Below, piece by piece: positions 2,886 to 52,865 of a stretch of 64,000 bases of DNA (positions within the stretch are counted from its first letter, which is position 1; every line of letters starts with the position of its first letter). The translations under genes were made by a program, and so were the position numbers. Origin of the DNA: Paramoeba atlantica (taxonomy: Eukaryota > Protista > Discosea); the NCBI GenBank assembly GCA_977017575.1, contig CDRNVI010000040.1, positions 124,001 to 188,000 of the forward strand. The letters are read 5' to 3'. The notes under the pieces were generated by a model that searched no databases, was not told the DNA's origin, and saw nothing but the letters and a program-made list of their open reading frames with translations.

Positions 2886-3555
2886 TTGGCCGAGGGTTCC
2901 GGTGGGGGGGAATCCCGTTAACAACGTGACACATGATTATTGGTTTTATGCAGGCTTTCTTTTGAACTATGTTTGTGCATGTGAATTCTATCTATATATC
3001 GTATTATGTGTTCTTTGATTTTGGGACGATTTGGAAGTGTGATTATATTAGCCATAGGTATTTACTTATATTTGTTTGTTACTTATAAGTTTCATGGAGC
3101 CCCCTCGGCGTGGATTTCTAATAGTCCACGTTTTGAAATTTAGCCGAGGGGCTGTTATGTATTTGCCTGCTGGCCCTTCGGGGCACATAGTTTCTTCGAA
3201 TTATGATTTGTATTCAGAATTTTACATGGGATGGGTATTTACTATTATCTTATATATCCTTGTTAGGTTGTTATTTTACTTCGCTTTAAGTTTTTGTGCC
3301 CACCCACCAAGCCCCCAGCCATTTGGCCGAGGGTTCCGGTGGGGGGGAATACATTAACAACGTGACACATGATTATTGGTTTTATGCAGGCTTTCTTTTG
3401 AACTATGTTTGTGCATGTGAATTCTATCTATATATCGTATTATGTGTTCTTTGATTTTGGGACGATTTGGAAGTGTGATTATATTAGTCATAGGTATTTA
3501 CTTATATTTGTTTGTTACCTATATGTTTCATGGAGCCCCCTCGGCGTGGATTTCT
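2886..3555. repeat. Tandem ~437-bp AT-rich repeat (one full unit plus a ~233-bp second copy); third partial copy at 5240-5389
   Basis: 2886-3119 is nearly identical to 3323-3555; about 150 bp recur at 5240-5389; all copies share ...GGAGCCCCCTCGGCGTGGATTTCT. Confidence 0.95.
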
Positions 3556-4712
3556 GAACTCATTGTCACGTCGTCCTGATATGCTCTTATCTTGACTTCC
3601 GGGTAAAGACTGGCGATTTCCTTCAAAGGACCCTGCAGTAACGCACAAAAGTAGAGCGAGGATAGGGCGGACCCTTGTCTGAACCCACATGAACTTTCAA
3701 TCACGGAGTGTAACGAATTGTTTGCGAAGAAAAGGAAATCTGAAGGCTTGCCGTATTCTAGGTAAAACATTCTCATGAAAGGTTTGAAGATCGAAGGCTG
3801 TTGTAGTAGGGCTTGAGCAATTGCGGTACGATGCGGTGTTTTGTAGGCATTCTTAAAATCCACTGTGAGAATCGTGTAGCCGGTGTCGTGTTCGTCCAAA
3901 AGCTCATGAACTATTGATTCACACGCATTCCGTTGAAGAATACCTCGCTGCACTGGCTGGCAAAATTTCTCCACTGTATTGTTGTGTCGCATTAAAAGAA
4001 TCGTTCCGCAGATCTTGAGGATAGTGTCTCCCATTGCCACTGGTCGTATCCCGTTTTGAGGTTTTGCTAACGCGATGATCCTGCAGCGAGTTAGTCGTTG
4101 ACGAACGTTTTCTGCGAGATCTCCGTTGATGACGTCGCGGAACATGTGACAGAGTGCGAGACACGATTCCTCATCCTCTACCAGAAGTCTCATCATGTTT
4201 TCACTGAATCCTGTGGGCCCTGGCGATGCTCCTTTTGACAGCCTCGCCGTCGCTTGACGCACCTCCGATTGATCAACTACCCCGATTCGAGGGAAGTCTC
4301 CATCGATGTTTTGTGGTAAGGGACCTTTGGGGTGAAGGTCGCTAAGCTTGTTCGACTTCTCATCAGCACTGAGGGATGAATCTTTGTATATATTGTCTAG
4401 AAATGGCGTTTGTGACTCCATGGATTGTAGGGGGCGTCGTCGACGTCGCTTGACAGTGACTTTACGAATCGTGGTTAACGAGTATTTCATGGCGGAAAAG
4501 AGCTTGTGCCAAATTCGGTGGCGTTGGGGATACGCGCTATCGGCATAGTCACGTACTATATCTCTATAGATTGCGATCACGCAAGGGATAAACTCCGGTG
4601 CAACTGTGCGCAGAGTTGGCATTGGCTCCAGGTCCAAATCGTCTTCTGTGTGTCGGCATTTGACAGTTTGTGTGGTATGGGCCGTATCTTGTTGCACGCT
4701 GGCGTCCCACAT
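3556..4712 (-). pseudogene. CRE/SLACS-clade non-LTR retrotransposon RT, 3'-truncated just after YQDD
   Basis: KGASPGPTGF, IALAKPQNGIRPVAMG, TVDFKNAY, GFRQGSALS, AYQDD; the ORF runs into the repeat at 3555. Confidence 0.85.
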
Positions 4713-4976
4713 CAGTTTGAAAACACAAACGTTGGCTTGCGGACGGATATGTCATTTTAGATGAGGGCTAAGTATATATGATTTGCTTTGAAAATACTTT
4801 GTCTGAGGACCATAAAACCGCGATAGTGTCGCCAACCTGACTCTCGGCCACAACCCGTCCGAGTACTCCCGTGTATTCCATAGCCAGATTTCTGATATTA
4901 TCTCGTGAAATTCACGTCTGCTCTCCTCCCTGCAGCATATCAGTAATCTGGTATATATAAAGTCAACAAGGTACCC

Positions 4977-5018
4977 TAGGCATCATATCTCCGAGGAGAT
5001 GTTACCTCCCTAGAACAA
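4977..5018. repeat. 42-bp direct repeat, second copy at 7527-7568
   Basis: TAGGCATCATATCTCCGAGGAGATGTTACCTCCCTAGAACAA; 40/42 identical to 7527-7568. Confidence 0.95.
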
Positions 5019-5200
5019 TGAGGTCCTCTTGACCAGTTGATAATGCCAATAAGAAAGCTGAAAGCTCTGCTCGTATTGGTGTTGCGTTAATAGAGTCCAA
5101 CGTTTTGTCGTTAGTCGCTAGAATCTCGTTTCCTTCGAAGGCACATGCCCCTGCGAATATACTGTTCGAAAGCTTTCTCACTGAACCATCACAATATATA
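5010..5200 (-). pseudogene. RNase H fragment
   Basis: Manual translation IYCDGSVRK...PIRAELSAFLLALS...DLIVLG matches the first two acidic motifs of RNase H. Confidence 0.65.
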
Positions 5201-5222
5201 TATGAAGCAAGTTGTTATGGGG

Positions 5223-5241
5223 CAACAAGGTACAGAAACTG
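5223..5241 (-). other. Spliced-leader-like 3' fragment CAGTTTCTGTACCTTGTTG
   Basis: Contains the conserved kinetoplastid SL core CAGTTTCTGTAC; identical 19-mer at 34102-34120; its last 11 nt recur at 4964-4974 (-). Confidence 0.7.
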
Positions 5242-5389
5242 TTTATGCGTGTGAATTCTATCTATATATCGTATTATGTGTTCTTTGATTTTGGGACGAT
5301 TTGGAAGTGTGATTATATTAGTCATAGGTATTTACTTATATTTGTTTGTTACCTATATGTTTCATGGAGCCCCCTCGGCGTGGATTTCT

Positions 5390-5980
5390 ATCGCAAATGG
5401 GAAGTTGATAAAACCAATGACGAAGGTCTCCTGTCACATAATAGGCCTCTCCGAGGCATAAAAGTTCTTTCCTTATGTCCTCTGGGGAAGGAAGTTCGAT
5501 GTGCGGAGGTTCGTTAACAAGTCGACTCGCCTCCTTGGCATTAATAATGAGCCGAGCAACAGTTCTATTTTTCAGTGTTTTGAAGGCTCTCGCCCAACTA
5601 GTTACGCTTTTTCTATCGATATCGCGCAGAGTTCCACATTTCTTAATTTGACTAATATCTAGTGTAGACAAGGCGAACGTCTTATCAAAATGGCACTTTC
5701 TTGCTTCCGGTTGGAGCACGGAATTGAAGACCTCATCTCGTGAAAGTATGTCTGTGGCTTCTGTGAGCCAGTGTATATTCATCGAGCTCGACCATACTCT
5801 CAGTCGTCCAAGGAGAACACAACCAGCAACACTTATCGGATCGAGCGGCAATTCGGTGTGTGATGTGCCGATTCGTATATCGAATTCCTCTAAAGTACGG
5901 TGGTATAAGCCTGTCGATGTGTTTAAATGGTCACCTCGCCGTTGCTCTACGTACTCCATGTCGCCTGTCATACTACACAT
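5390..5980 (-). pseudogene. N-terminal RT fragment of YR retrotransposon 2
   Basis: RLIINAK...YVTGDLRHWFYQLPI (DIRS/VIPER-type RT); truncated by the repeat at 5389. Confidence 0.75.
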
Positions 5981-6184
5981 GAAGGAATACTGTAATGTGG
6001 GAGACTACTATTCTATCATGTCAGTTGTATCATCAACTTCTAACTTTTTTGTAGAATTTGGGACCTCTCATACGTGTAGATACTACTTACTCACATACAC
6101 TAGAGATATCACATATCACTAGAGGTATCGGCGAGAACATTTCCTTAAATTACTTTTACTAATGTTATGGCATGTTCGGCCCTC

Positions 6185-6865
6185 TTATTGGTTATGTTGA
6201 TTGGGGTGTCGGCTGTAATGTTGTTCGGCAGTTGCGCTTCGCCATCGTCCCAAGGATTTCCTTTCTCCGGGTTCAACACCCCTCAACTTTAGGTCAGTCG
6301 CCTTACCATGCCTCAGTGAATGCATGGACCAAATTCTTTTTGGATCCCATTTGTATTCGATGGCAGCGTCATTTATTATGTTGTTCGCTTCCCTGGCGCT
6401 CCAGTTTGGAAAGATTAACTCATCTGGACATCCCTTCTTTAAGATCATCCACATTCTCTCGATCTTGGCGTCTGTATCTCGCAAATACACTTTTATCTCA
6501 TTTTCCCTTCTCCCTTTCCCTCCAACGGCTCGAACGTACCACCGTCCGTTCTCCGTTCTTATCAGATGTTCCTTTCGAAGCGTCCTGATCTCTGAACTCC
6601 TGAGAAGGCCTTCGAAACCCAGTTTCACTGCTCCCGCGTAGATTCCCCTTCTTTGTTCCACGCATGTGAGAAGTAACTCCTGCAATTTCTGACCAAAAAT
6701 CGGGCCTTGTGTTCCTGCTTCTTCTGAGTTGGTATTATACTTGCTCTTTGTGATGCATTTCACGTCGCTCGCATTCACTGATGAGCCCTCGGAACGCAAT
6801 TCTGAATTTACTATCCTGAGTCCACCTTTCGGACTCCGGCAAATCCAGAGTTTGTCGGTGAACAA
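6185..6865 (-). CDS. Tyrosine recombinase catalytic domain of YR retrotransposon 2
   Basis: GLLRSSE, KGR, HSLRHG, LGRW...HY give the R-K-H-R-H/W-Y residues. Confidence 0.9.
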   Translation of the reverse strand: MFTDKLWICRSPKGGLRIVNSELRSEGSSVNASDVKCITKSKYNTNSEEAGTQGPIFGQKLQELLLTCVEQRRGIYAGAVKLGFEGLLRSSEIRTLRKEHLIRTENGRWYVRAVGGKGRRENEIKVYLRDTDAKIERMWMILKKGCPDELIFPNWSAREANNIINDAAIEYKWDPKRIWSMHSLRHGKATDLKLRGVEPGERKSLGRWRSATAEQHYSRHPNQHNQ

Positions 6866-7124
6866 GGGCCGATCTCATCTTTTCAAGTCTAGAGGGACTA
6901 TAGTGCTCAGCAATAATTGCCAGTACATCAATAAACCTAGACATTGCGATTTCAGATACGTGTTCTATGCTAAGCAGATGCATCAGGATGCGCCAGTCCC
7001 TAGTTCGTTCCCGAGCCGTGGAAGCTTTCACAGCCGCGTCTGTAAGTTGCTCTATTCTGTAAGAGTTTTTGTTTGCTTGTTGAAGCTCGTCCCGGACCCT
7101 TTTCAAGGAGACTTTTTTAAGCAT
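6735..7124 (-). CDS. ORF overlapping the YR; probable YR N-terminal core-binding domain in another frame
   Basis: Helical 129-aa ORF immediately upstream of and overlapping the YR catalytic ORF. Confidence 0.5.
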   Translation of the reverse strand: MLKKVSLKRVRDELQQANKNSYRIEQLTDAAVKASTARERTRDWRILMHLLSIEHVSEIAMSRFIDVLAIIAEHYSPSRLEKMRSALVHRQTLDLPESERWTQDSKFRIAFRGLISECERREMHHKEQV

Positions 7125-7279
7125 TCAACTTTTATGTTAGTTAAATCAGTTTTAAAGTAATGTGATGTAGAGGGACAGAAAGGTACAGAAAATTAATTTC
7201 GTGTGACTTTATACTGGTCTTCTCGACTTCTGCTTCTGCTTCTCCCTTACATCTTCCACCGTCGTTCTCCTTAGTCTAG

Positions 7280-7513
7280 TCAATTCTTGGGGCATTTCGC
7301 GTCACCCCCCTTGTGTCCAACGTTGCCTCTGCACTTGAAGCAATACGTCAGCGCACGACACTCGCGTGCGACATGTCCTAACCGATTACAGTTAGAACAT
7401 TTCGAAGGCTGGCGATTAAGGAAAGACATGTGACTTTCTTTTCGTGAGCCTGACATGCTTCCATCCCAATTTTGTTGATGCATGACACTTCCTTTCGCTC
7501 TTTCCGCGGTCAT
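7280..7513 (-). CDS. Gag-like zinc-knuckle ORF
   Basis: CSNCNRLGHVAREC and CFKCRGNVGHKGGDAKC (CCHC knuckles). Confidence 0.75.
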   Translation of the reverse strand: MTAERAKGSVMHQQNWDGSMSGSRKESHMSFLNRQPSKCSNCNRLGHVARECRALTYCFKCRGNVGHKGGDAKCPKN

Positions 7514-7759
7514 GATTTTGATTTTTTAGGCATTATATCTCCGAGGAAATGTTACCTCCCTAGAACAAGCCCCCCTTATCGCTTGCTAGGAGCTGTGCCA
7601 CGCAGCACGCAGGTCAAATCCGAAGATTTGACCAGATCGAGCGCGAGCAGCCAGCTTATCTTTTTTTTAACCCCTTTTATATACTACAAGAAAATCTTCT
7701 TTATGAAAAAAACACTTCTTTTGAAGTGAAAAAACACAACACACTCTAAAGATTATGCT

Positions 7760-8010
7760 GAATGACACCCACCCTAGTTCCTTAGTACCTTGTTATATCC
7801 GGTACCGGGCGGTGTCATTCTCACGCTGCGATGTCTGGGTGACCGTTACCCTAGTTATTTTGTGCCTTGTTTTGCTGGCACCGGGTAGCGTCATCCGCGG
7901 GACCTTGATTGTACCCACCCTAGGTATGTAGCGTCTTGTTGTGCGACGCCGGGTGAGTGAGCTAGGGAAGCTGGGGTCGCTACGCCCCATCATTCGACAA
8001 AAGTCGAATG
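7760..8010 (-). repeat. Three bulged-hairpin units plus a two-hairpin leader; candidate structured RNA
   Basis: Units at 7760-7820, 7847-7887 and 7916-7955; homologous to 14074-14373. Confidence 0.8.
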
Positions 8011-8152
8011 CCCTGACATACGGGGGGAGATACGCTCTCCTGTCCAGTAATGATGGATTGTTGTTGAGTGCATTTATATTTCCGCGGTCATGCGCAACCG
8101 CTGCGTTGTTAACATCATTTTTGCCTTTTTAGCAACCGCATTGCGTACAATA

Positions 8153-8584
8153 TTAGCGGTATCGTTGTCTCCCATGAGGTTTTGATGGCTTCCCCGTTCC
8201 GTTCATCACCCTTCCCGCTACCTTGCTCAGTAGCTTCCATACCATTTGATGAACACCTCGTGTCAACCATTTTGCGTTCAGCAATCCCGCTCCGCCGACA
8301 GCGTGTTCTTCCAATAAAGCTTCCTCCCCTACTTCCAGAGAGTCAGCAATCGCCCTTTTCATTCCCAAACTTTGTCGGGTGGCGATAACCCCTGGTGGTG
8401 CTATCGAGTCAATGAACGTCTGAGAGAGTTTAGGTGCCGCGTAGTTTCCGATGAGAGCGAAGAGTACACCCTCCTCTGACGAGTTTGTCTCATGCATCTT
8501 CGGTTTCGCTTCTTCGTCCGCGCGATCAACCTCTATCTTATTGAGCGCGTTTCGCGCAATTTCGAGAAGGAGCTTTCCCGTCAC
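8153..8584 (-). CDS. Hypothetical ORF (probably element-borne relic)
   Basis: 143-aa frame with no recognised motif. Confidence 0.3.
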   Translation of the reverse strand: MTGKLLLEIARNALNKIEVDRADEEAKPKMHETNSSEEGVLFALIGNYAAPKLSQTFIDSIAPPGVIATRQSLGMKRAIADSLEVGEEALLEEHAVGGAGLLNAKWLTRGVHQMVWKLLSKVAGRVMNGTGKPSKPHGRQRYR

Positions 8585-9140
8585 CTTTTTGTCATCCTAT
8601 TTGCCGTCTTCAACTAGACTAGCAACATCCAGTTTTTCAGCATCGGGAATGGTTTCTCCCACAGCTTTGAGCACGGAGAGAGTGAAGAAATGTCGCTTTG
8701 GCCAATTGTTATGTAAAGCAATGAAAAGGGGTGTCCACTTTTCTTTTCTATAATATTAAGTAGAACGTACTTTTCGAGAACCTTGTACTCGCCCTCGATG
8801 CAGTTGAGTATAGCGATGTCCGTCTCCGAGTCTGACATATAGTATGTAAATTGTACGCAACCGTTTGATATCACCTATAAAATTATGTAGGCTACACGTT
8901 TTCTCATATTGCGGTGGATCATATTCATATTGGCACATTTCATCACACTCGTATTTCTACATTGCATTAGTAGATGATGAAGGACTCTCCCACAGTGTCA
9001 AGCCAAGAAGTTAGCTTCTAGTCTTCAGAGCTGAGCCTAGAAGCATTTCTTGTCTCTCCACCGGGGCGAGATCAAAGTGCCGCAATTACCATCTAAAGGA
9101 TTTCTCATGTTTCGGTAATCACTTCGAAAAAAAACAAGAA

Positions 9141-10092
9141 ATGCTTCTGTCTGGTCTATCAAAATTCATTTCAGCATCTATACAATGTTGTCGGAATCCC
9201 ATCTTATGCAGTCGCATGGGTGGAATGATAACGGTACAGTCTTCGTCAGTAGTAGGGGTTATGAACCGATGGGGAGTAAGGATAAACACAAGGAAAACTA
9301 AAACACAGGTAATTCAACCTTGCAAAGCTGAAAAGTATTACACATCCGAGATAAAAGCACAAGAAGAAACTATTGAACAAGTACGGAACTTCTCATACCT
9401 TGGAACAGTTATCAGTGAAGATGCTTCATTGGAAGAATAAATAGAAAACAGAATAGGAAGAGCTTGCGCAGGTATGAGAAAATTTAGAGACTTGTGGAAA
9501 GACAAGGCTATCACAAGGAAAACGAAAAGACATCCTAGAAGTCTGTATAGTACCAATTCTACTATATGCGAGCTCAACGTGGGCGCTTACACCAACCCAG
9601 CATCTGAAACTCAACCGCGCCTAGATAAGATACATCAAAACATCTTTCGGCATACCATGGGTCAAGAACGACAATAGCGACTCCAATGATAAACAACACC
9701 AAGAATCTGCGAAGGATGCAATAAGATATACCTCCCAGAAGGAATGCCTATCGATCGCAGGAATGGACCCACTCCAGCCATAAATAGATGCCCGAAGTTT
9801 ACTGTTTGCTGGACACGTCGCAAGAATGGGTCCAGATAGGTTCCCGAACAGAGTGCTATTCGGCAAATTTCGATCAACTCAAAATAGAGGAAATACATAT
9901 AAACGAAGCCTGCCATGCTATAGTAGAAGCCTTGTAGCTGCACTGGAAAGAGTTGGGATAACAACAGATTGCTCATGGAAACTGAAAGCCCAGAATAAAA
10001 AAAGTTGGATAAAGACAATAGATGAATATAGAAAGAGCACGAAAACCCAAACGTTAAACAGAGGTACTAAAAAATCATTCCCAAGGAACTAA
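9141..10092 (+). pseudogene. RTE-clade LINE, C-terminal RT region, frameshifted
   Basis: GVRINTRKTK, FSYLGTVIS, RIGRACAG, LLFAGHVARM...PNRVLFG, W..KAQNKKSW. Confidence 0.8.
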
Positions 10093-10696
10093 AACTGTGT
10101 GAACGCTAGACCCTGTAATGGATAGGCCTGAAATGCACCCTGAAGATGATCCCCTAAGGGGAACTTCATACCGCTTTTCGGGTTGGGTACCGCTCATCTG
10201 CGGCTTGCAAATAACCCATTAAAACGGGGTTAGGGTCAGAATTCGGAGAGATAGGAGCCCTTTGAAGCCGAGGTTTAGCCCTTTGAAGCTGAGAAGCCAA
10301 GGCCACTCGGGGGTATAACACCCTAGAAGACTTGGTCCATTGAAGCTGAGGAGTCTAAACTGTTGAAGCTGAGACTCAACGCTCCCGAACTATGCCAGCA
10401 AGCAGTAATGGGCGGCTACTCCGGGGGAGGCCACTCTCGGTCCTGCGGAACACACTTATGTAGTCCTTGGATTTTGCATGCTGTCCTTGGATTTGAATGT
10501 CTCAACCTGAAAGGGTTAAGATAGTTTCAGCGGACAAGGTGGATGAAAATCCACCTTTGAGTAGTAGCCTCCCCCAAAGCTACCTCGGCTTACTCCGGGG
10601 AGGCAACATCCCGAATGGGATAGAAAGCCTAACAACATTCAACAACAATCTTCGTCAACGGTACCATTTGTGATGGAATTCGTGTTTTGAACCACC

Positions 10697-11385
10697 TACT
10701 ACCGCGTCTGGTACGGTTATTGTAACCAACAGGGGTGTCGTTCTCACCTTCTGTACCGCGTCTGGTGCTATTTATGCGACCCGTCAGGGGTGTCGCCCTA
10801 TTCTTCTGTACCGCGTCTGGTACTATTTGTGCGGCCCGTCACGGGTGTAGCCCTACTCTTCTGTACCGCATCTGGTACTATTCATGCGACCCGTCACGAG
10901 TGTCGTCCTGCTCTTCTGTATCGCGTCTGGTACTATTTATGCGACCGGTCAGGAGTGTCACCTTACTCTTCTGTACCGCGTCTGGTACTATTTATGCGAC
11001 CCGTTAGGGGTGTCGCCCTATTCTTCTGTACCGCGTCTGGTACTATTTATGCGACCCGTTAGGGGTGTCGCCCTATTCTTCTGTACCGCGTCTGGTGCTA
11101 TTTATGCGACCCGTCAGGGGTGTCGCCCTATTCTTCTGTACCGCGTCTGGTACTATTTGTGCGGCCCGTCACGGGTGTAGCCCTACTCTTCTGTACCGCA
11201 TCTGGTACTATTCATGCGACCCGTCACGAGTGTCGTCCTGCTCTTCTGTATCGCGTCTGGTACTATTTATGCGACCGGTCAGGAGTGTCGCCCTACTCTT
11301 CTGTACTGCGTCTCGTACTATTTATGAAACCGTCAGGGGTGTCGCCCTCTCCCTCTGTACCGCGTCTGGTACAATTTACGCGACT
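10697..11385. repeat. 55-bp minisatellite, about 13 units, with a 330-bp higher-order repeat
   Basis: Unit CTGTACCGCGTCTGGTACTATTTATGCGACCCGTCAGGGGTGTCGCCCTATTCTT; variants at 10751-10970 recur at 11081-11300. Confidence 0.97.
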
Positions 11386-11582
11386 GATCCCTTCTTGGTT
11401 CACCCAAAAGGGTGGTAAGCCGGAGCGCCACGTCAAGGCGAAGGATCGAGCTCCGGTGGAGAGACAAGAAGTGAGCGTCACGTGCGTGACGCCATACTTC
11501 CCGCTCACGTCTGTGGCCTCCTTTAACCCTGCTGGACCAAAACCACTTTCTGCGCCCCCCTCTTGTTTTCTGGAAAGGATTC

Positions 11583-11603: not shown

Positions 11604-12339
11604 TATTGGGCCTTTTGACTCCGAAACGTTATGGCCCCTCAACTCCCCAAACGGGCAGTCCGAATACGTCTTTCGACGTATCCGGAGAGCCAGCCATAAC
11701 AAGCTACGGCTGACCTCCGCTTGGAGAGGAGTTAGGTTACAGCTAGGGAGGTGAGGTGCGCTATACCCCTGCACCTTAGGTAATGCAAATAAGGTGCCCC
11801 TTGACAAAAAAAACCACTCTATCTTTTGAGGGTGGATAAAAAAAACACCAAAAAAAAAGGTTACGGAAAGAATTGTGCAAGAGGTTTATAAGAGTGATAA
11901 CTGGCCCTGCGGGGCACATAATATTTCTTTATTATGACTTTCATAAGAATTTGAAGCGTTTGGAATTGAGTATACGTGTATCTATAGGAAACATTTTCAT
12001 TTCCAGTTTTAAAAATTTTTGCCCCACCCACCAACCCCCATAACCATTCCCCGCGTGGACCCGTTCGCCTAAGGAAGAAAACTTCGTTTGAACCACCAAG
12101 AAATCTCTTGGTGGTGGAGTTCAGGGTTGATATGTTGTATTGGTGATCTTGTTTTTATTGGCTACTTTACAGCAAGTATGCAGATTTTCTGAAAGGATTT
12201 ATGGCAAGAGAAAATCTGAGGAATGTAGTGTGCAAATGAGGGAAGTATATTTGTGATATTTTATAAAGCTTTCTATTGTTCTTTCTACTGTTTTATATGT
12301 TCCTCGAAGCGCAATTCAAACACATTCCAAAGATTATCC

Positions 12340-12410
12340 CGAATGGCACCCACCCTAGTTTCTTAGTACCTTGTTATATTCGGTACCGGGCGGTGCCACC
12401 CATTCTGCGT
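12340..12410 (-). repeat. Solo copy of the terminal bulged-hairpin unit
   Basis: Matches 7760-7820, including the flanking AAAGATTAT. Confidence 0.85.
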
Positions 12411-12438
12411 TGTCAGAATGACATCTACACGGCTTGGA

Positions 12439-12530
12439 GGTACGTTCGTCGAGTTCTCAACGAAAAACCTGATTTTCGTTGAGTACTCAACGAACCGTCG
12501 GATTTTCGTTGAGTACTCAACGAACGTACC
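12439..12530. repeat. Three 20-bp palindromes at 30-bp period
   Basis: TTCGTTGAGTACTCAACGAA at 12475 and 12505, variant at 12445; outer inverted repeat GGTACGTTCG/CGAACGTACC. Confidence 0.9.
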
Positions 12531-12714
12531 CTGTGAGGATTCATACCCAAACCTTCTTGGACTAGCTTTTCTATTTCGCTCCTTCCATCACCATTCCCCA
12601 CTGTGTCCTTGTGGGTCCCGGGCTTTGGACCGGTATATTATTGCCCTGCTTATACTATAAGCAGGGTTAAAGGAGGCCACAGACGTGAGCGGGAATTTTT
12701 ATAGTAGATACAGT

Positions 12715-13262
12715 GGCGCGTGAGAAAGTCAGTGACGGCAGTGTAGCTGCAGTGGCACGTGCGAGAGTAAGTGCACCGCCACGTGAGGAAGTGACTGCAG
12801 TAATGCAATGTGGCTGCAGTGGCACTCGAGAGAGTTAGTGTACTGCCACGGGAGGCAGTGACTGTATTGATGCAGTGCAGCTGCAGTGGCGCGTGAGAGA
12901 GTAATAGCACTGCCACGTGAGGAAGTGACTGCAGTGATGCAGTGCAGCTGCAGTGGCACGTGCGAGAGTAAGTGCACTACCACTGTAAGTACAGTGGTAC
13001 GTGAAAGAGTACTCTAAGGGTACTGCCACGTGAGGCAGTGAACGCAGTGTAGATGCAGTGGCACGTGAGAGAGTAAGTGTACTGCCACGTGAGGCAGTGA
13101 ACGCAGTGCAGATGCAGTGGCGCGTGAGAGAGTCAGTGACTGCAGTGTGAGAGTAAGTGCACTGCCACGTGAGGAAGTGACTGCAGTAATGCAATGTAGC
13201 TACAGTGGCAAGTGCGAGAGTAAGTGTACTGCCACGTGAGGCGGTGACTGTATTGATGCAGT
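12715..13262. repeat. Degenerate ~62-65-bp minisatellite
   Basis: Recurrent GCAGTGGCACGTG(C/A)GAGAGTAAGTG(C/T)ACTGCCACGTGAGG(A)AGTGA. Confidence 0.9.
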
Positions 13263-14073
13263 GTGTAGCTAGAGTGGAACGTGGGTGCAGGTGGCTGCAC
13301 ATGAAACACCCACATGAGAGACCGTGCGCCACCAGTGGCTGCACTGGTGTTCCATTTAGAGAGTGTTGTTACAGATCGCCATGTTATGGAAAGGTGGCCA
13401 GCTGGGAGATAACCCAGATTGAAAGGGGCGAGGGAGATACGAAGCAACAGGCGTGGCAGATTCCCACTGAAAAGAAATGGTATCTCCCCGCACCAAGTTC
13501 GTCTCCGAGCCAGCAAGCGCTAAGGCGTTTCTCGTGCGGGGAGATACTTTCTATAATCGAGGGTAGAGCGGTAGTTATACAACCACCGCAACAAGATAAC
13601 CAATAAAACATATCAACACTGAACTCCACCGCCAAGAGATTTCTCTCTTCCTTACGCGAACGCGGGGACCACCCTTTCGCCAGTCATTGTTCTGTCCCTT
13701 TAGCTCGTTGTTATATAGAATGCCCTAACCCGCCATCCACCTCTCTCTTTTTTTTTGTTTATTTCCCAAGGGCGAATATTTATTGACGACTTATCGGATC
13801 GGCAGGGTTCTTTTTGGTAGATACTTAATGTGGTTTAACTGCTATTTCCGTCTTTTTTAGAAAATTTAATAACTGTTTCAATTCAATGTTGATCCCAGGC
13901 GGCACACCGTTCCACATCTTAGAACGCACAAGCGCGACTTTTACCATCCTTGTGGAGGTATTCACTGAGTTGTGAATAAACCACCTCCCCATTGAGTTCC
14001 TGTAGCAGCAGCTGAAATTCGGCATAGATGCGCTTGCGCATCATCCCACATGCATCTGCCAGAGCAATCAGAG

Positions 14074-14373
14074 CATCCGGCTTATGTCGGATGATGGGAC
14101 TTCGCGATCCCAGCCTCCCGAGCTAACTCACCCGGCGTCAACATAACGAGACGCTAAAGGACTAGGGTGAGCGTACACTATCGCTTTCTGAAATTCCAGC
14201 ACCCGGCGTCAACAAAACGAGACGTTAAATAACTAGGGTGTTAGGAATATTTTTGTAAAGAGACTGCCCGGTGCCAACATAACAAGGCACTAAACAACTA
14301 GGGTAGCGGTCTTTCTCGTGGTGAACCACCCGGTGTCAAGATAACCAGACAACAGGCAACTAGGGTACGGTTC
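14074..14373 (+). ncRNA. Candidate structured RNA: two-hairpin leader plus four bulged-hairpin units with unique spacers
   Basis: Compensatory stem changes; G.U pairs favour the + strand; homolog at 7760-8010 (-). Confidence 0.5.
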
Positions 14374-14659
14374 ATCGGTGTTCTTAGTGCACGCCAATCA
14401 GTCGCTGACTCGATGACTTTTCTCGATCGGACTGAGCACAACAGACACCAAAGTAATCTTGGAAGGGGCGTACCAGCCTTCTCTGGTGAGGCCATATCCC
14501 TAGTTGGACAAACGGCCTGACAAATAGAAATAGAATGTTGATCCCATCTGACTTCGTTGATCTCTTCTTAATTGCTGCCAAACATGACCTATTACTGCGT
14601 TCGCAAAAATTTGTGATTTTTTTTTGCAGCTTTTGAAAGTGTTACACAATTTCAAAAGA

Positions 14660-15545
14660 AGTCACTCATGCTGCGTGCTTCGCGTTGAAAACTACCTCCG
14701 CGTTTAACGAAGGGCCTAAAAAAGAAAATTTGACCTGGAAAGCTGAAGAAAACTGAAGGATTTGCGCCAAAAGTAGCAGATTTTCGGGTAAAAATGGGGT
14801 GTTTTTCGCGTATTTTTGCTCTCAGAGCACTGAATCCGACATTATCACTCTTCGTAAACACGTTTGTTACCGGCCCCAAGCCCGGCACTGCCATATTAGG
14901 CGGAGTGTGAGGGTGAAGATTTCAACACAACTATAGCACGATTATGAACTTAAGAATATAACTGAACTACTTGTTTCTAGTATCCAGTAGAACTACTACA
15001 TTTAGCTCCATTTAACTAAACAATCTTACACGCCTGCAAATGTCACGCATCAATTCGCTTGGCCCCGGCCTGGCAATACTCCAGTCTCTGTAACGAGGAC
15101 CATGGGCTCCGTACCCTTCTGGGTACCACCGCCCCAGCATTCGTGCTGGGAGGCTCATGGGCTCCGTTTCCTTCGGGACACACTTGCCTTTTTTTGATCA
15201 AGCATTTAGGCTCTTCGTTAAACGCGGTGGATGTTTTCAACTTAGAAGTCACTCATGCTGCGCGCTTCGCGTTGAAAACTACCACCGCGTTTAACGAAGA
15301 TCCTAAAAAAGAAAATTTGGCCTAGACCCCCCCTGGACCCCCCCCCTGGACCCCCCCCTGGACACACCTCCTGGACCCCCCCTGGACCCCCCCTGGACCC
15401 CCCCTGGACCCCCCATTTTTTTCAATTTTTCAGTTTTAGACTGCCGGAGCCCCCTTTTATTTTTTTTTCTTCTATTATATTACTGTGTTCCTCTTTATAT
15501 TTTCACTGTTTTTGTTCACTTTTTTCAATAATCGAGGGTAAAGCG
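14660..15545. mobile_element. Dispersed repeat family A (non-autonomous DNA element) with ~110-bp hairpin module and (CCCCCCTGGA)n
   Basis: Segments recur at 16680-16830 (inverted), 18362-18470, 19060-19235, 50925-51140, 51460-51830, 56415-56470 and 13553-13590. Confidence 0.7.
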
Positions 15546-15963
15546 GTGTGGCGAGTAGCGGAGAAAAACTGACAAAATGGTAATCTCTCTCTAAAATATA
15601 CGTATTCGTTTCTTTTTGTCTCATTTCTTCACGCGCAAAGTCTTTGTGTTGAGATCAGCAAAATGCAACAAAAAACAGCCCAAACGGACACTTGGCTGAA
15701 AAGGATGCTTGGCTGGTGGGTGCCTTATTGGTGCGGAGGGGTTTGCTGGTACAACTGGGGGTTGCTTGTACAACCCCTCCGCACCAATAAGGCACCCACC
15801 CTTAACTTTTCAGCCAAGTGTCCGTTTGGGCTGTTTTTTGTTGCATTTTGCTGATCTCAACACAAAGACTTTGCGCGTGAAGAAATGAGACAAAAAGAAA
15901 CGAATACGTATATTTTAGAGAGAGATTACCATTTTGTCAGCTTTTCTCCGCTACTCGCCACAC
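15546..15963. mobile_element. Foldback/MITE-like near-perfect palindrome (~420 bp)
   Basis: About 155-bp outer inverted repeat plus inner inverted repeat GGGTGCCTTATTGGTGCGGAGGGGT. Confidence 0.9.
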
Positions 15964-34081: not shown

Positions 34082-34120
34082 AAACATTGATTATCAAGGT
34101 ACAGTTTCTGTACCTTGTTG
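34082..34120 (+). other. 39-nt spliced-leader-like sequence
   Basis: AAACATTGATTATCAAGGTACAGTTTCTGTACCTTGTTG has the canonical SL length and register; not followed by GT. Confidence 0.65.
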
Positions 34121-35659: not shown

Positions 35660-36183
35660 TACTGTGCCCCCCCTAGTTATCTATCACACGTCAACCCCCC
35701 TTTGTTATTCTTTTAAACTTTTTTTTATTCTTTTAGACCGCATAAGAGGGTTGAAACCTATGAAAGACAAAACCCGCATATTTCTCATTGACGTGGCGAA
35801 GAAAAATACTCCCCCCTAGTTATCTGTCACACGTCACCCCCCCCTAGTTATCTGTCACTTTTTGGCGCTTCGATTTTTTTTCGTCGACTACCCCCCTAGT
35901 TATCTGTCACTTTTTAAAAATAGCTAAAATAGCTTTTTCCAAAAAAAATCATAAAATGAAACTTCCAGTTTTTCTTTTTGTGTTTCAAGTGAATGGTCGT
36001 GCGTGGTACTATGATAAACCGTTTCTGTAATTCCATGTTCTGACTTTTTTTTGCGACAGACACCCTCCCTAGTTATCTGTCGCACACTGATCCGCCTAGT
36101 TATCTGTCACACCCCTACCCCCCCTAGTTATCTGTCACCTTTTCACGAAGAGTAGTGACAGATAAGTAGGGGGGGGTACAGTA
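35660..36183. mobile_element. Family-B-type MITE with 7 direct and 1 inverted CCTAGTTATCTGTCAC-type motifs; partial inverted copy at about 40262-40455
   Basis: TACTGTG(C)n...(G)nTACAGTA ends. Confidence 0.9.
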
Positions 36184-36947: not shown

Positions 36948-38378
36948 ATGTCGTCTTTTAGCTCCATTGTCCCACAGATCGACCCCAACGTACTCCGTAC
37001 GTTACACACTGAGTTCAAATTCACAAGCCCCACTCAAATTCAGTCGTCCGCTCTCCCTGCGCTATTATCTGGGCGCAGTTGTAGCGTGCAAGCCGAAACG
37101 GGCGGGGGTAAAACGCTCTGCTTTCTTATACCGATCGTTTCTCGCTTACAGCAACATAAGCGCAGTGCAGATCCATGTCCATACGCCATCGTACTATCAC
37201 CCACTCGAGAGCTATCATTACAAACTGAAAAAGTTTTGGAAAAACTTTTGACGGGGTTCGATGGAAGAATCAAATGGGTCACTGTCATCGGGGGTACGAA
37301 AAAGTCACAGGACCACGCTCGGCTGCTGAAGGCCAATATTGTCATTGGGTGTCCGGGGCGTGTGTTGGACCACATGCAGTCTTTCACGGCATGGAAATTT
37401 CCTTCCCTCAAAGTATTCTGCCTGGATGAGGCAGATCGCATTCTTGACAGCGGCTTTGAAGAGCACGTCACCCAAATTCTCTCAAAGCTCCCGAAAACAG
37501 ATCTCCAGCTCATGCTCTTTTCCGCCACCCAGGACCACACAGCACGTGACGCCATGCAACGTGTGATTCAACAATTCGGCACCCTCGAGCACATTTCCAC
37601 CCACAAGAACGCCTCCGATGTCTGTCACCGTCTCGCCCACGGCTTCGTCGCGGTCCCCCCGGAACACAAATTCCTCCTGCTCTACACGTTACTCAAAAAA
37701 TACCACAGGAGTGGACAAAAAGTGCTGGTCTTTGTGGCCACCTGTAACCAAGTACGCTACTTTGCGGATCTCTTGAACTACCTGGACATCCCGTGTACCC
37801 CGCTGCATGGCCAGATGCGGCAGTCGACCCGCACCTCCACGTTCCACCAGTTCTGTGCGGCCAGCCACGGGGTGACGCTGCTGACTACGGATGTCGCGGC
37901 CCGCGGGCTGGACTTCCCCGCGGTGGATTGGGTGGTCCAGCTGGATGCGCCGGAGAGTGTGACGAAGTATGTCCACCGGGTGGGCCGCACCGCCCGGGGG
38001 GAACAGGGCTGTGGCAACGCACTGCTGATGCTGAGCCCCCAGGAAACGCCGTTTTTGGATTTTTTAACGGCGAAATTGACGAATCCACTGCAGCAGTATG
38101 CGATGGATACGAAAAAACTGAATGTGGCACTGCAAATGGAGTTGCAATCGCTCGTAGGGAAGAATTACTATTTGAGAAGAAGCGCGCATGAGGCGTATAA
38201 GTCGTTTCTGCAGAGCTACGCGACGCACTCGCTGAAAGTGGTGTTTGACGTGTACGCGTTGGATTTGTCCAAGGTAGCGACGGGGTTCGGGATGGAGACG
38301 GCTCCCATTGTGGATTTAGGGTTATCCGAGAGCTCGTTGAGGAAAAAGCGTGCGAAAAGAGTTCGACATGATGAATAG
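36948..38378 (+). CDS. HAS1: DEAD-box RNA helicase HAS1/DDX18
   Basis: DEAD, FSAT, HRVGRTARG; C-terminal KNYYLRRSAHEAYKSFLQSYATH. Confidence 0.88.
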   Translation: MSSFSSIVPQIDPNVLRTLHTEFKFTSPTQIQSSALPALLSGRSCSVQAETGGGKTLCFLIPIVSRLQQHKRSADPCPYAIVLSPTRELSLQTEKVLEKLLTGFDGRIKWVTVIGGTKKSQDHARLLKANIVIGCPGRVLDHMQSFTAWKFPSLKVFCLDEADRILDSGFEEHVTQILSKLPKTDLQLMLFSATQDHTARDAMQRVIQQFGTLEHISTHKNASDVCHRLAHGFVAVPPEHKFLLLYTLLKKYHRSGQKVLVFVATCNQVRYFADLLNYLDIPCTPLHGQMRQSTRTSTFHQFCAASHGVTLLTTDVAARGLDFPAVDWVVQLDAPESVTKYVHRVGRTARGEQGCGNALLMLSPQETPFLDFLTAKLTNPLQQYAMDTKKLNVALQMELQSLVGKNYYLRRSAHEAYKSFLQSYATHSLKVVFDVYALDLSKVATGFGMETAPIVDLGLSESSLRKKRAKRVRHDE

Positions 38379-38873: not shown

Positions 38874-40533
38874 TAGTTGTATTTGAAGAACTCCATTTGG
38901 CAGTTTCATGCATTAAGTAATGTTCTTTTTGATTCCTTAATCTCTTAGGAATTACTTAAAGCATACTTTAGCATACTTGAAGCTAAGCCAGTCTAACTCA
39001 AATGGGAGCATATGGAGAACACTTCTTTCTGTTCTTATGTTGGCGAAATGTTGCAAGTTTGAGAGATTCCGCATCGCGATGGAAGGACCGACGTTTTTGG
39101 CTGAAATTACTCAGGAGTATACGAAAATGTATCGAAGGATACATTTGAGTACTGAAGGATATAATGAGCTATGCATCCTCTTGGATGACGGTCGAGCCGT
39201 TTTCGCGTATGTTAGTGCGGTTTGTATGCTTATGGAGATGTGTTTGGGGCGGGATTCAGGCTCCTCAGCTTAGACTCGAGAATACAAGCTATGCACCATT
39301 CTTCTGACGAAATGTCCTTTGACATCAAGTAAAAGTCTTTATTTATCTTACAGTAAAAGGTCCTATTTACCTAAGTAAAAGGTCTTTCTTTATCTTACAC
39401 TAGAGTAGACTTTTCTTTACAATTTTGAATTTTCGATACATAAACTTTCCGGAATTTGACTTTTTTAATTCGTCAACCTCCAATTCGGAGGTTTGAACTG
39501 TACGTGGGGGGGGGGCTGTGAGCCTGTTGGACGTCCACGTTTCTTCGTACGTGGAGAAGGAGCATTGCCAGCAGAATAAAAGACTATTGGGGACTGCAAG
39601 GTCATCGAACGAGCAATGAGTTCGATGAGTGGAGTGCAGCACGTCCTGTTCGAGGAACGGAAACGCGAAGAAGATGTATCGATTTTTCGTTGAAGAGTCA
39701 ACGAACTGGCACTCAGTTCATTGAACGTTGAACGAGCGGTTTTCGGAAACGTTTTTTAGTAAGCAAGGTTAATGGTAAGCGAAACGGTAAGAGCCCTGGC
39801 GCGTACCAACAGGGACGGTAAGGACAGAAACAGTATCTTTAGGTCTTGAAGGATTAGTGCCTTGCATGTAAGAAAATTTCAGTGCCCAACACATTTTTTT
39901 ACCAGTCAGTTCTTGTTTTTTTAGCCAGCCAGGTTGAGCTCTGAGTCTCAGCAAAAAATACTGTATAATATACAGTATTTTTTTGTTCCTTATACTCTAA
40001 TGCACAAAAAAAGTACTGCCTGTGTACGGGTATTTAATATCCCTCGTAGTCCGATGCACAACTGACGGAACTCACTTACTCAAATTCTTCGGGGGGGGGA
40101 AGACCATAGTTGTCTTGAATGCACTTCATGACGCAAGAAACGAATTACAGAAACGGTTTATCATAGCACCACGCACGACCATTCGCTTGAAACACAAAAA
40201 GAAAAATTGTAAGTTTCTTTTTGTGATTTTTTTTTGGAAACAGCCATTTTACCTACTATTTTTAAAAAGTGACACATAACTAGGGGGGTAGTCGACGAAA
40301 AAAAATCGAAGCGCCAAAAAGTGACAGATAACTAGGGGGGGTGACGTGTGACAGATAACTAGGGGGGAGTACTTTTCTTCGCCACGTCAATGAGAAATAT
40401 GCGGGTTTTGTCTTTCATAGGTTTCAACCCTCTTATGCGGTCTGAAAGAATATAACCGAGTGATGCCAATACCGGATTTTTCACGACACGAACTCTTTTA
40501 CTTGTCTCTTCATCCTCTCTCCCCACCACCACC

Positions 40534-50687: not shown

Positions 50688-51832
50688 AATCTTGCCTTCA
50701 GCTATCCTTTTTGCGTCGCTTAGAAACGTTGCATTGCAAAGTACTTACTGGAGACGATGCGGAACACCGAGGGACACCGATCTCAATGGACCCACACCGA
50801 GGGACTCACCTCTACAGCACTAATCTATAAAAAGAATTTGAACATTTATTCGGTATTCTTCCATAATTATTCACATTTAAATTCAGGGTTCGCAGAAACT
50901 ATAAAACTATCAATAATTTTCTTTTTTAGGCTCTTCGTTAAACGCGGTGGTTGCTTTCAACTTAGAAGTCACTCATGCTGCGCGCTTCGCGTTGAAAACT
51001 ACCGCCGCATTTAACGAAGAGCCTAAAAAAGAAAATTTAGCCTGGAAAACGGAAAGATTATAGCCAAAAATAGCCGAATTTCGGGTACAAATGGGGTCAT
51101 TTTCGCATATTTTTGCTCTCAGAGCACTAAATCCGACATTTGCGCGTGGGAAATCACTCGCAGGCATGAATGAAAGCCTACCGAACGTATTGGGTAGAGA
51201 ATGCGACTCCAACCATACCATTCTTTCGACACAAAAATGCCCCTTTAGGTCCGAAAAATACTTTTTCACCTTTTTTAGTCAAAAATGGGTCATTTTGGGG
51301 GGCGCAGCACAGTTCGAAGAAGTGATACCTTGCAAAAGCAACTGCGGAGAAAGCTAGTGTAGGTCCCAAACTATCAAAATACAATAGGGGAAACCATTTT
51401 GGAAAAATATTTTTTTTGTCATTTTTTCGCCAAGTTGAATTTTTTTTCAAAAAATTTTTTCCGAAAAAATCCGAACTTGGCGGACCCGTCCTGCGGATAC
51501 GCGGGGGGGTCACCCCCGGGTAGGGGGGTGGAAAATGCGCGCCAAGACCCCGGCTACCCTTTCTGCAGTTTTTTTTCGAAAACTAATTTTTTCGAAAAAA
51601 TTTGATCGACCATGCCCCCCCCCCCCTGGACCCCCCCCCTGGACCCCCCCCTGGACCCCCCCCATGGACCCCCCATTTTTTTCAATTTTTTTTTTCAGTT
51701 TTGGACCACCGGAGCCCCCTTTTATATTTTTTTCTTCTATTATATTACTGTGTTCCTCTTTATATTTTCACTGTTTTTGTTCACTTTTTTTTCAATAATC
51801 GAGTGTAGAGCGGTAGTTTTACAACCACCGCA

Positions 51833-52865
51833 ATAGTACTATATAGTTACTATAAACTTTTTTCGAAAACTATAAAAAACTATATTTTTTTGTTTCACAT
51901 TTTAGGCACTCCGAAGCTCACCAACACGCCATAAATACACGGCGAATTCATTTGTGTACGATTTTTCTTATTTTTAAACCCGAAAATTGATGCCCGAAAT
52001 TAAAGTTACGAGAGGTAGTTTCTGCAAAGATTATTTTATTGAACTGCTGCACACGGAGGGAAGTAAACAAGCGGTTGAATGTAACTTGTGTCAGGAGGGG
52101 ACGTACCCCAGTCCCATCGCGTGGCCTTGACAGATTGCCTTGTGCGAATCTTGCGTCCCGAACATCTTCTCACTGCATCGCTGTCGCCGCGCTTTGGCTG
52201 GAGCCACCGACGTTATGTCTTGGGACTGAATAACTGCTGCTCACAATTCTATGAGTTTGAATAAATACAATCATATGAGTCTGAATAAATTACGCGGTGT
52301 GTTGTCGAGTGGAGAGTTTGTACTTCCTATCGTCACTCCTTTCGCATGCGTTTCATTGCTATTTCTGAGGAGATGACACACAAGTTGATGATATTTTTCG
52401 GCGGTGATGGAATCACGGGGAAGAGGGAGCATGTTTCGATAGCTATGTAACCCAGGATAAAGTGGACGAGGGAGGTTCTAAAAGCACCTTTAAACCACCA
52501 CAAAAATAGAATGATATCTCCCGGTTTGTAAAGGATTCCGACGTGCCAAAAGAATCTTTAAGGGACATACCCTTCCATTTTTATGGTGGTTTAAAGGTGC
52601 TTTTAGAACCTCCCTCGTCCACTTTAGCTTGGGTTACATTTTTTTTAGAATTTCTTGTCATATCATACGTATGTAAGCGTGTAAGAACGCATGTAGAGGC
52701 GTGTGTATGTCCTTCACAAGCGGAGAGGACTCAAAAAATATCACTTGTAAATTGAAAAAAACTTTATAGTTTTCTTATAGTTTTATAGTAAAATATAGTA
52801 AATATAGTACTATATAGTAACTATATTCAATGAAAAAAACTATATTTTACTATATTATAGTTTCT
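51833..52865. mobile_element. ~1-kb segment bounded by inverted AT-rich ends, with an internal ~60-bp inverted repeat
   Basis: ATAGTACTATATAGTTACTATA at 51833 and its inverse near 52805; internal IR about 52445-52505 / 52575-52640. Confidence 0.55.

Follow-up and report, generated by a model that had tools for sequence, protein, structure and literature searches.

The array of bulged hairpins that attracted attention in a 64-kb stretch of DNA (hereafter the window) is best explained as the conserved body of a small mobile element (about 0.3-0.55 kb) that encodes no protein. That selection acts on the structure of this element as a single-stranded nucleic acid is well supported. The preferred reading, to which a probability of about 0.5 is assigned and for which three copies (eight units) could be read, is that the element is a SINE-like retroposon with a structured RNA whose putative function is to bind mobilising proteins. 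It would move via an RNA intermediate, with reverse transcriptase supplied in trans as for SINEs; such an intermediate is suggested by the retention of sense-strand structure, by target duplications of variable length and by one copy that lacks its 5' part. The covarying-hairpin element matches no known RNA family.

Copies of the element and their insertion sites

A covariance model made from the units, together with a pattern search, located eight units of ~45 nt in the window, four on each strand, which belong to three copies designated R, L and M (Table 1). Over about 118 kb (the window and ~55 kb of related loci) the matches of the covariance model were exactly these eight units (R1-R4, L1-L3 and M1), and none lay outside the three copies in the rest of the window or in the related loci. 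Pairwise likeness among the units is 73-90%. In the R copy a unit reads CACCCGG, stem, A-rich loop, stem, a bulge ending in ACTA, and GGGTG. The four units that the initial annotation had placed at 14127-14171, 14199-14241, 14264-14306 and 14323-14373 are borne out at those coordinates, the last of them (R4) being the weakest. The "unrelated ~20-30-nt spacers" of that annotation are largely lower stems, which are divergent in sequence between copies yet paired. The predicted fold of the sense strand thus comprises a terminal 8-bp hairpin, a second small hairpin and three or four tandem hairpins of ~60 nt each. In each tandem hairpin a variable lower stem is followed by the conserved CACCC/GGGUG stem, a 3' bulge of 9 nt that terminates in ACUA and a 6-bp upper stem, which is closed by a conserved G.U pair and carries the 10-nt A-rich loop.

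The R and L copies are ~73% identical (14068-14312 against 8016-7765 on the reverse strand), with the homology of R to L beginning at 14068, and no relationship was found between their 3' regions. The M copy is 90% identical to 7738-7817 of L and retains just the 3' 104 nt of the module. Unit R2 resembles a chimera of R1 and an L2-like unit.

Table 1. Window coordinates of the element copies, their parts and target-site duplications, and of the associated retroelement
Feature	Position	Strand	Description
R element	14073-14394	+	Complete, about 322 nt: leader with hp1 and hp2, four bulged hairpins, 27-nt tail
Leader hairpin hp1 of R	14074-14093	+	8 bp, 4-nt loop; extreme 5' end of element
Leader hairpin hp2 of R	14096-14111	+	GGGA...UCCC
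Unit R1	14127-14171	+	Outer stem CUCACCC/GGGUGAG, 6-bp upper stem, 10-nt loop, 9-nt 3' bulge; -17.6 kcal/mol, z -4.08
Unit R2 with lower stem extending into "spacers"	14194-14247	+	z -2.76
Unit R3 with lower stem	14257-14314	+	z -3.03
Unit R4	14321-14378	+	Degenerate, weak fold, z -0.14; contig depth near baseline
L element	7457-8011	-	555-nt insertion: leader, three bulged hairpins, decayed fourth unit, ~290 nt of further hairpin-rich sequence; z -5.22
L module (R-homologous part)	7738-8011	-	L1 7914-7957, L2 7844-7889, L3 7768-7813
M copy	12319-12422	-	104 nt, 5' part missing; unit M1 12349-12394 with lower stem; M1 z -3.36
5' target-site duplication of R	14065-14071	+	CAATCAG
3' target-site duplication of R	14395-14401	+	CAATCAG
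5' target-site duplication of L	8012-8019	-	ATGTCAGG; codons M-S-G of gag
3' target-site duplication of L	7449-7456	-	ATGTCAGG; M-S-G, same gag frame
Host gag, residues 1-283	8023-8838	-	VIPER/TATE-like tyrosine-recombinase retroelement; tblastn against intact relative L001
Host gag, remainder	7283-7448	-	CCHC zinc knuckle; followed by recombinase, 7115-6206
Degenerate VIPER/TATE-like tyrosine-recombinase retroelement	2900-11533	-	Order gag (CCHC), tyrosine recombinase, reverse transcriptase
Inverted arms of window retroelement	11444-11473 and 9044-9073		30 nt
55-nt tandem array, leader of window retroelement	10676-11386		About 13 units
Reverse-transcriptase fragments of window retroelement	from 5875 downwards	-

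The R and L insertions are both flanked by direct repeats. CAATCAG is the sole 7-mer common to the flanking windows searched around R, and a contig of run X3 ends at 14396. The L copy interrupts the gag gene of a VIPER/TATE-like retroelement. Aligned with the gag of an intact relative from the same assembly (L001), the window sequence reaches residue 283 at 8023 and resumes ~570 nt later; residues 295-334 of L001, the zinc-knuckle end, align to 7402-7283. The 555-nt insert starts exactly with leader hairpin hp1, and the two copies of ATGTCAGG each encode M-S-G in the gag frame of their own side, so that the reading frame is continuous across the insertion site. Both duplications (8 bp for L, 7 bp for R) end in TCAG, adjoining the 5' end of the element, which may reflect either a preference for certain targets or microhomology at the 5' junction. 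A search for a target duplication around the M copy found none. Because gag continues on the far side of the L insertion and a separate direct repeat flanks each copy, L and R represent independent insertions, in opposite orientation, of a single element family. For the same reasons they are not the inverted terminal repeats of a single 6.6-kb element. The array is likewise not a leader immediately upstream of the retroelement, as it lies inside gag, and the true leader, with its 55-nt tandem array, is at 11.5-9.0 kb. The 7.8-kb homolog noted at the outset does contain related units, but as an inverted, independent insertion rather than a tandem partner.

Contigs of three public runs from the same organism were placed on 13300-15300, where the very small RNA run X5 gave no contig. 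In the two deeper runs the summed contig depth over 14037-14304 is 576-2111 versus 16-65 in neighbouring unique sequence, an excess of about 20-60 times over the flanks, and in one run position 14103 is covered by at least 13 different contigs. These values suggest tens of further copies in the genome, summed contig depth not being a copy number. The label of repeat-spacer array is misleading, as the hairpins make up the body of a mobile element that is dispersed, is flanked by target-site duplications and, by depth, has many more copies.

The degenerate retroelement of the window lies between converging gene blocks ending at 2377 (+) and 18648 (-). In run X1 one 255-nt contig passes from 13800 directly to 14559, free of mismatches and with GATC at both break points, so that a variant exists that lacks 758 bp (13801-14558), including the whole R element. 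Very high-copy repeats at 14657-14843, 15205-15548 and 50913-51835 lie on either side of the R region and are met again at 51 kb and in locus L002; their contig depth reaches about 100,000, and they are unrelated to the hairpin units. A second repeat family is found at 35677-36175 (-), at 40150-40450 (+) and in locus L010 (18285-18411), its inverted window copies flanking a DEAD-box helicase gene (36948-38378). It has a terminal palindrome (C-run, TTATCTGTCAC, loop, GTGACAGATAACTAGGG, G-run) followed by repeats of GTGACAGATAACTAGGGGGGG, and resembles the hairpin units both in containing ATAACTAGGG and in its order of parts, namely stem arm, A-rich stretch, CTA, G-run.

Conservation of the fold on the sense strand

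On their own, six of the eight units fold as sense-strand RNA into a common bulged hairpin (z -2.4 to -4.1), in which a 5-7-bp outer stem (CACCC/GGGUG) is directly stacked with a 6-bp upper stem, with a 10-nt loop and a 9-nt 3' bulge; the complementary strand of the units folds inconsistently. With a 13-pair structure laid on the eight-unit alignment, 91.3% of the cells are paired, whereas sliding the partners by one to three columns leaves 34-39% paired, and none of 500 shuffles reached the observed pairing score. The inner pairs 12/30, 13/29 and 14/28 show only compensated variation (C-G/U-A, G-C/A-U, U-A/C-G) and are never unpaired. These results confirm the earlier claim that the inner stem changes its sequence and keeps its pairing. 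The loop and 3' arm shared by L3 and M1 (AACAAGGTAC) are exactly complementary to the last bases (GTACCTTGTT) of a spliced-leader-like 39-mer at 34082-34120, a match with a chance of roughly 0.02.

Compensated pairs occur outside the units as well, in the leader hairpins and in the "spacer" stems. Between R and L, one pair of hp1 is compensated (C-G to U-A) and another goes from G.U to A-U, and hp2 has an A-U to G-C change, in agreement with the proposal that both leader hairpins covary with the copy at 7.9-8.0 kb. The "spacer" stems add four to ten pairs to each unit's outer stem, with wholly different sequence between copies, and the lower stems of L3 and M1 are set apart by a compensated change (A-U to G-C). 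The L/R consensus fold has 59 pairs, of which 11 are changed on both sides, although this structure was predicted from those two sequences themselves; the unit fold also arises from single sequences. Paired columns contain 26 substitutions; when these were placed at random in 20,000 trials, the mean number of broken pairs was 11.9, and every trial broke at least two.

A neutral repeat, in which palindromes persist by chance or through conversion between units and structure is not selected, is very improbable in the light of these data. It is true that the sample is small and the units are mutually related, and that the chimeric R2 shows conversion to occur, so that part of the between-unit compensation in matching positions may be gene conversion. 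Conversion from unit to unit cannot, however, explain the compensated changes in the single-copy leader hairpins and the unique lower stems. Not one of the 59 consensus pairs is broken in either copy, against about 12 expected, and unpaired columns differ between L and R more often (43 of 122) than paired ones (26 of 118). The suggestion of selection on structure thus stands, as selection on a single-stranded nucleic acid.

The non-canonical pairs point to the strand that folds. On the sense strand the L and R copies have ten G.U pairs and no A.C pair, and the eight units together have 12 and 3, respectively, consistent with the initial remark that most non-canonical pairs are G.T on this strand; the upper stem is closed by G.U in six of the eight units. 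The R copy folds better on the sense than on the antisense strand with RNA parameters (z -2.80 versus -0.67) and with DNA parameters (z -1.98 versus +0.32). In the L copy both strands fold strongly (sense z -5.22, antisense z -4.48), and the argument for polarity therefore rests mainly on the G.U asymmetry.

Proposed mode of movement and possible relation to the retroelements of the genome

Known RNA families provide no match for the element. Rfam gave none at the gathering score over the whole window and none at E values up to 10 over 13900-14500; over 7400-8100, the same relaxed threshold returned two chance-level snoRNA matches on the opposite strand, far below the gathering score. The assertion that the motif belongs to no known family is accordingly upheld on the element strand. 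No ribozyme model of Rfam matches either copy, which speaks against a known self-cleaving ribozyme class, and a snoRNA cluster is rejected; C/D or H/ACA-type boxes are absent. A pattern scan of JGI metagenomes gave five matches, all of them single chance matches without a stem. A CRISPR array does not fit units that are only 73-90% alike, spacers that pair with each other, or the eukaryotic retroelement context.

These negative results also bear on the rather improbable alternative of a cellular gene, present in many copies, for a non-coding RNA such as a precursor of several small structured RNAs, of which the copies found here would be retro-pseudogenes, with selection acting on a cellular function and not on mobility. 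The strong conservation of the structure, loops and bulges included, would suit such a gene, target duplications also fit retro-pseudogenes, and the window copies do lie in a retroelement graveyard between converging gene blocks. Apart from the lack of an Rfam match on the element strand and of snoRNA-type boxes, however, no copy stands in a gene-like context, and L and R are ~27% different with every pair kept, for which several active source lineages are a better explanation than dead copies of one gene.

The SINE-like retroposon accounts for a short, dispersed, non-coding unit, as seen in the three window copies and the contig depth, and for flanking target-site duplications (8 nt for L, 7 nt for R). 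The polymerase III-type head and the partner-LINE, A-rich or simple-repeat tail of SINEs are absent. ARAGORN detected no tRNA-like head, excluding a tRNA-derived SINE, nor did ARAGORN and Rfam find any tRNA, 7SL or 5S head in the element; neither L nor R has a poly(A), A-rich or simple-repeat tail. Their ends also bear no likeness to the (ATT)n-tailed non-LTR element of locus L003. This lack of the usual head and tail, the unrelated 3' regions of L and R and the failure to find a partner sharing either end count against the SINE-like reading. The L003 element was recognised in a 99% identical copy of the region in the ENA assembly (ERZ24900291), as an extra 1.5 kb (L003:7709-9208) between window positions 7437 and 7419. 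It is a 5'-truncated non-LTR element with a 436-aa open reading frame (C-terminus of reverse transcriptase and RNase H) and an (ATT)n tail, and it replaces ~17 nt of the target. Because this insertion is polymorphic, it is probably recent.

For the SINE-like retroposon a mechanism may be envisaged in which an A-rich motif (AYAAC) is displayed in loop and bulge, six to eight times per element, and the repeated hairpins would form a multivalent binding platform for a mobilising protein, which could be a Gag-like chaperone or a reverse transcriptase. The fold would be maintained by selection in active source copies, and the stem sequences would drift. Among protein binding, self-cleavage and recombination, the three functions put forward at first, we infer that protein binding is the most plausible.

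A role as single-stranded DNA is distinctly improbable. The hairpins would then be sites for a rolling-circle (Helitron-like, HUH) enzyme or, attC-like, for a tyrosine recombinase, and the repeated ATAACTAGGG would be a protein-binding motif. In favour of this role are bulged hairpins read by structure rather than sequence and G.T pairs on one strand only; CTAG follows the hairpin by 6 nt in each unit, as at Helitron 3' ends, the second repeat family has GATAACTAGGG beside its long palindrome, and Helitron-like proteins are encoded in the assembly. HUH/Helitron insertion and simple recombinase integration, however, make no 7-8-bp duplications such as those found here, which are real and include non-conserved bases; they argue against integration of the recombinase or HUH type. 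Moreover, CTAG always precedes GGGT, which pairs with CACCC, and never host sequence, the "spacers" of 20-30 nt cannot be cassettes, and a copy without its 5' part is typical of reverse transcription.

If the element is mobilised in trans, a possible though doubtful partner is one of the VIPER/TATE-like retroelements of the genome, the leaders of which contain tandem units with TAGGG on the sense strand. The recombinase of the intact relative L001 is 55% identical to that of the window element, and its leader has four 49-nt units, which begin or end 270 nt from gag on the upstream side and are enclosed by perfect inverted arms of 18 nt. These units have a CGCCC...GGGTG frame, and the complete ones end in ACTAGGGTGAGCG, a 13-mer that is also present in R1. 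The 55-nt array of the window retroelement (10676-11386) occupies the homologous position, and a third element, in L010, has three 66-nt leader units. The leader arrays of L001, the window element and L010 contain 7, 7 and 3 occurrences of TAGGG on the sense strand, against 0.2-0.7 expected, and CACC(C)-loop-(G)GGUG hairpins are present in the leaders of L001 and of the window's own retroelement. The link between the hairpin units and the recombinase retroelements, as judged from these sequence likenesses, is at most suggestive: the L/R units and the recombinase-element leaders (L001) share just the 13-mer and the outer-stem frame. The unit model scores a single unit of the L001 leader array, weakly, at 14 bits, and only via the outer stem and ACUAGGGUG, a likeness of about 20 nt. 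No significant structure was detected in the retroelement leader arrays, and no further units in the loci around the recombinase relatives L001, L002, L009, L010, L011 and L012. Protein searches with gag and reverse transcriptase returned the query itself as the sole match. In the public kinetoplastid assembly that contains L012 (NCBI GCA_001460835.1, CYKH01000520.1), probably that of Bodo saltans, a recombinase fragment is 43% identical to that of L001, in keeping with a bodonid or kinetoplastid affinity of the organism from which the window comes.

The same leaders invite the idea that a VIPER/TATE-like retroelement gave rise to the element as a solo segment of its leader or terminus, which its own machinery left behind or inserted, much as SIRE of Trypanosoma cruzi corresponds to the A2-B2 terminal repeats of VIPER (PMC6681497). 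The tandem array of intact L001, with its inverted arms upstream of gag and units ending in the same 13-mer, the leader hairpins and the enrichment of TAGGG on the sense strand are all in its favour. Such an origin nevertheless appears rather unlikely, as none of the five related loci holds an autonomous element carrying the L/R module at its end and the likeness to the leader arrays is limited to about 20 nt. In published complete VIPER and TATE sequences the motif occurs at chance level without enrichment, and the paper on VIPER/TATE terminal repeats does not mention hairpins. Target duplications are not expected of tyrosine-recombinase (DIRS-like) elements, and both L and R have them.

Other repeats adjoin the window retroelement. 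A perfect 36-nt inverted repeat (11498-11533/12660-12695) joins its 5' edge to the start of a 67-nt tandem array (12692-13263) that is rich in CAGTG and CACGTG. This array, at 12.69-13.26 kb, was considered as a relative of the units and rejected, since it has no TAGGG and no link to them. At 12445-12534 there are three tandem 30-nt units, each with the perfect 20-nt palindrome TTCGTTGAGTACTCAACGAA.

Comparison with known systems

Mobile elements with a non-coding body that is clearly selected for RNA-type structure are rare test cases for template recognition by reverse transcriptase or Gag. In the present element the hairpin is compact (~60 nt) and repeated, has conserved loops that are well delimited, and is amenable to direct probing; the lineage concerned, that of kinetoplastid relatives, is one for which no cis-requirements of tyrosine-recombinase retroelements are known. 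It also calls for caution in annotation, as hairpin arrays of this genome may belong to mobile elements and not to cellular RNA genes.

Among DNA-level systems, Helitron 3' ends resemble the units in having a hairpin of variable sequence with CTAG a few bases on. A Helitron terminus is nevertheless rejected, because CTAG is internal to every unit and always before GGGT, and because the insertions carry 7-8-bp target duplications and are not at A/T sites. Integron attC sites are also imperfect hairpins with unpaired bases that keep structure over sequence, occur in arrays and are linked to a tyrosine recombinase. In contrast, the present element is eukaryotic, has target duplications, and lacks R and L boxes and the GTTRRRY box; its intervals, or "cassettes", are just 20-30 nt and form stems.

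SINEs and non-autonomous retroposons, such as RIME and NARTc of trypanosomes, are alike in being short, non-coding and dispersed, in having target duplications that vary in length and in including a copy that lacks the 5' part. The element departs from them in having no tRNA, 7SL or 5S head and no poly(A) or LINE-derived tail that could be found, and in having a body of tandem covarying bulged hairpins. SIRE, a non-autonomous derivative of VIPER, is likewise a short interspersed kinetoplastid element associated with VIPER-like elements (PMC6681497), and the hairpin element has the motif and the tandem-unit layout in common with the VIPER-like leaders of this genome. Unlike SIRE, it has target duplications and no termini found in common with an autonomous element, and published VIPER and TATE lack the motif.

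A further and unlikely reading is that the tandem bulged hairpins are a new class of cis-acting recognition module, read as RNA or as sense-strand cDNA by a VIPER/TATE-type Gag, reverse transcriptase or tyrosine recombinase. Such a candidate module would be functionally akin to integron attC or to the epsilon signal of hepadnaviruses and, if true, would give a first handle on template choice by the poorly understood VIPER/TATE-type retroelements. Epsilon and the retroviral packaging signals are recognised by a Gag protein or a reverse transcriptase, and VIPER-like elements have an RNase H that groups with the hepadnaviral one (PMC6681497). Epsilon differs from the present units in that its bulge is 6 nt long and on the 5' side, whereas theirs is 9 nt and on the 3' side, and in that three or four units occur in series. 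The two have no similarity in sequence. Like epsilon and the retroviral packaging signals, the units are bulged stem-loops with a conserved bulge and loop, several of which would act together.
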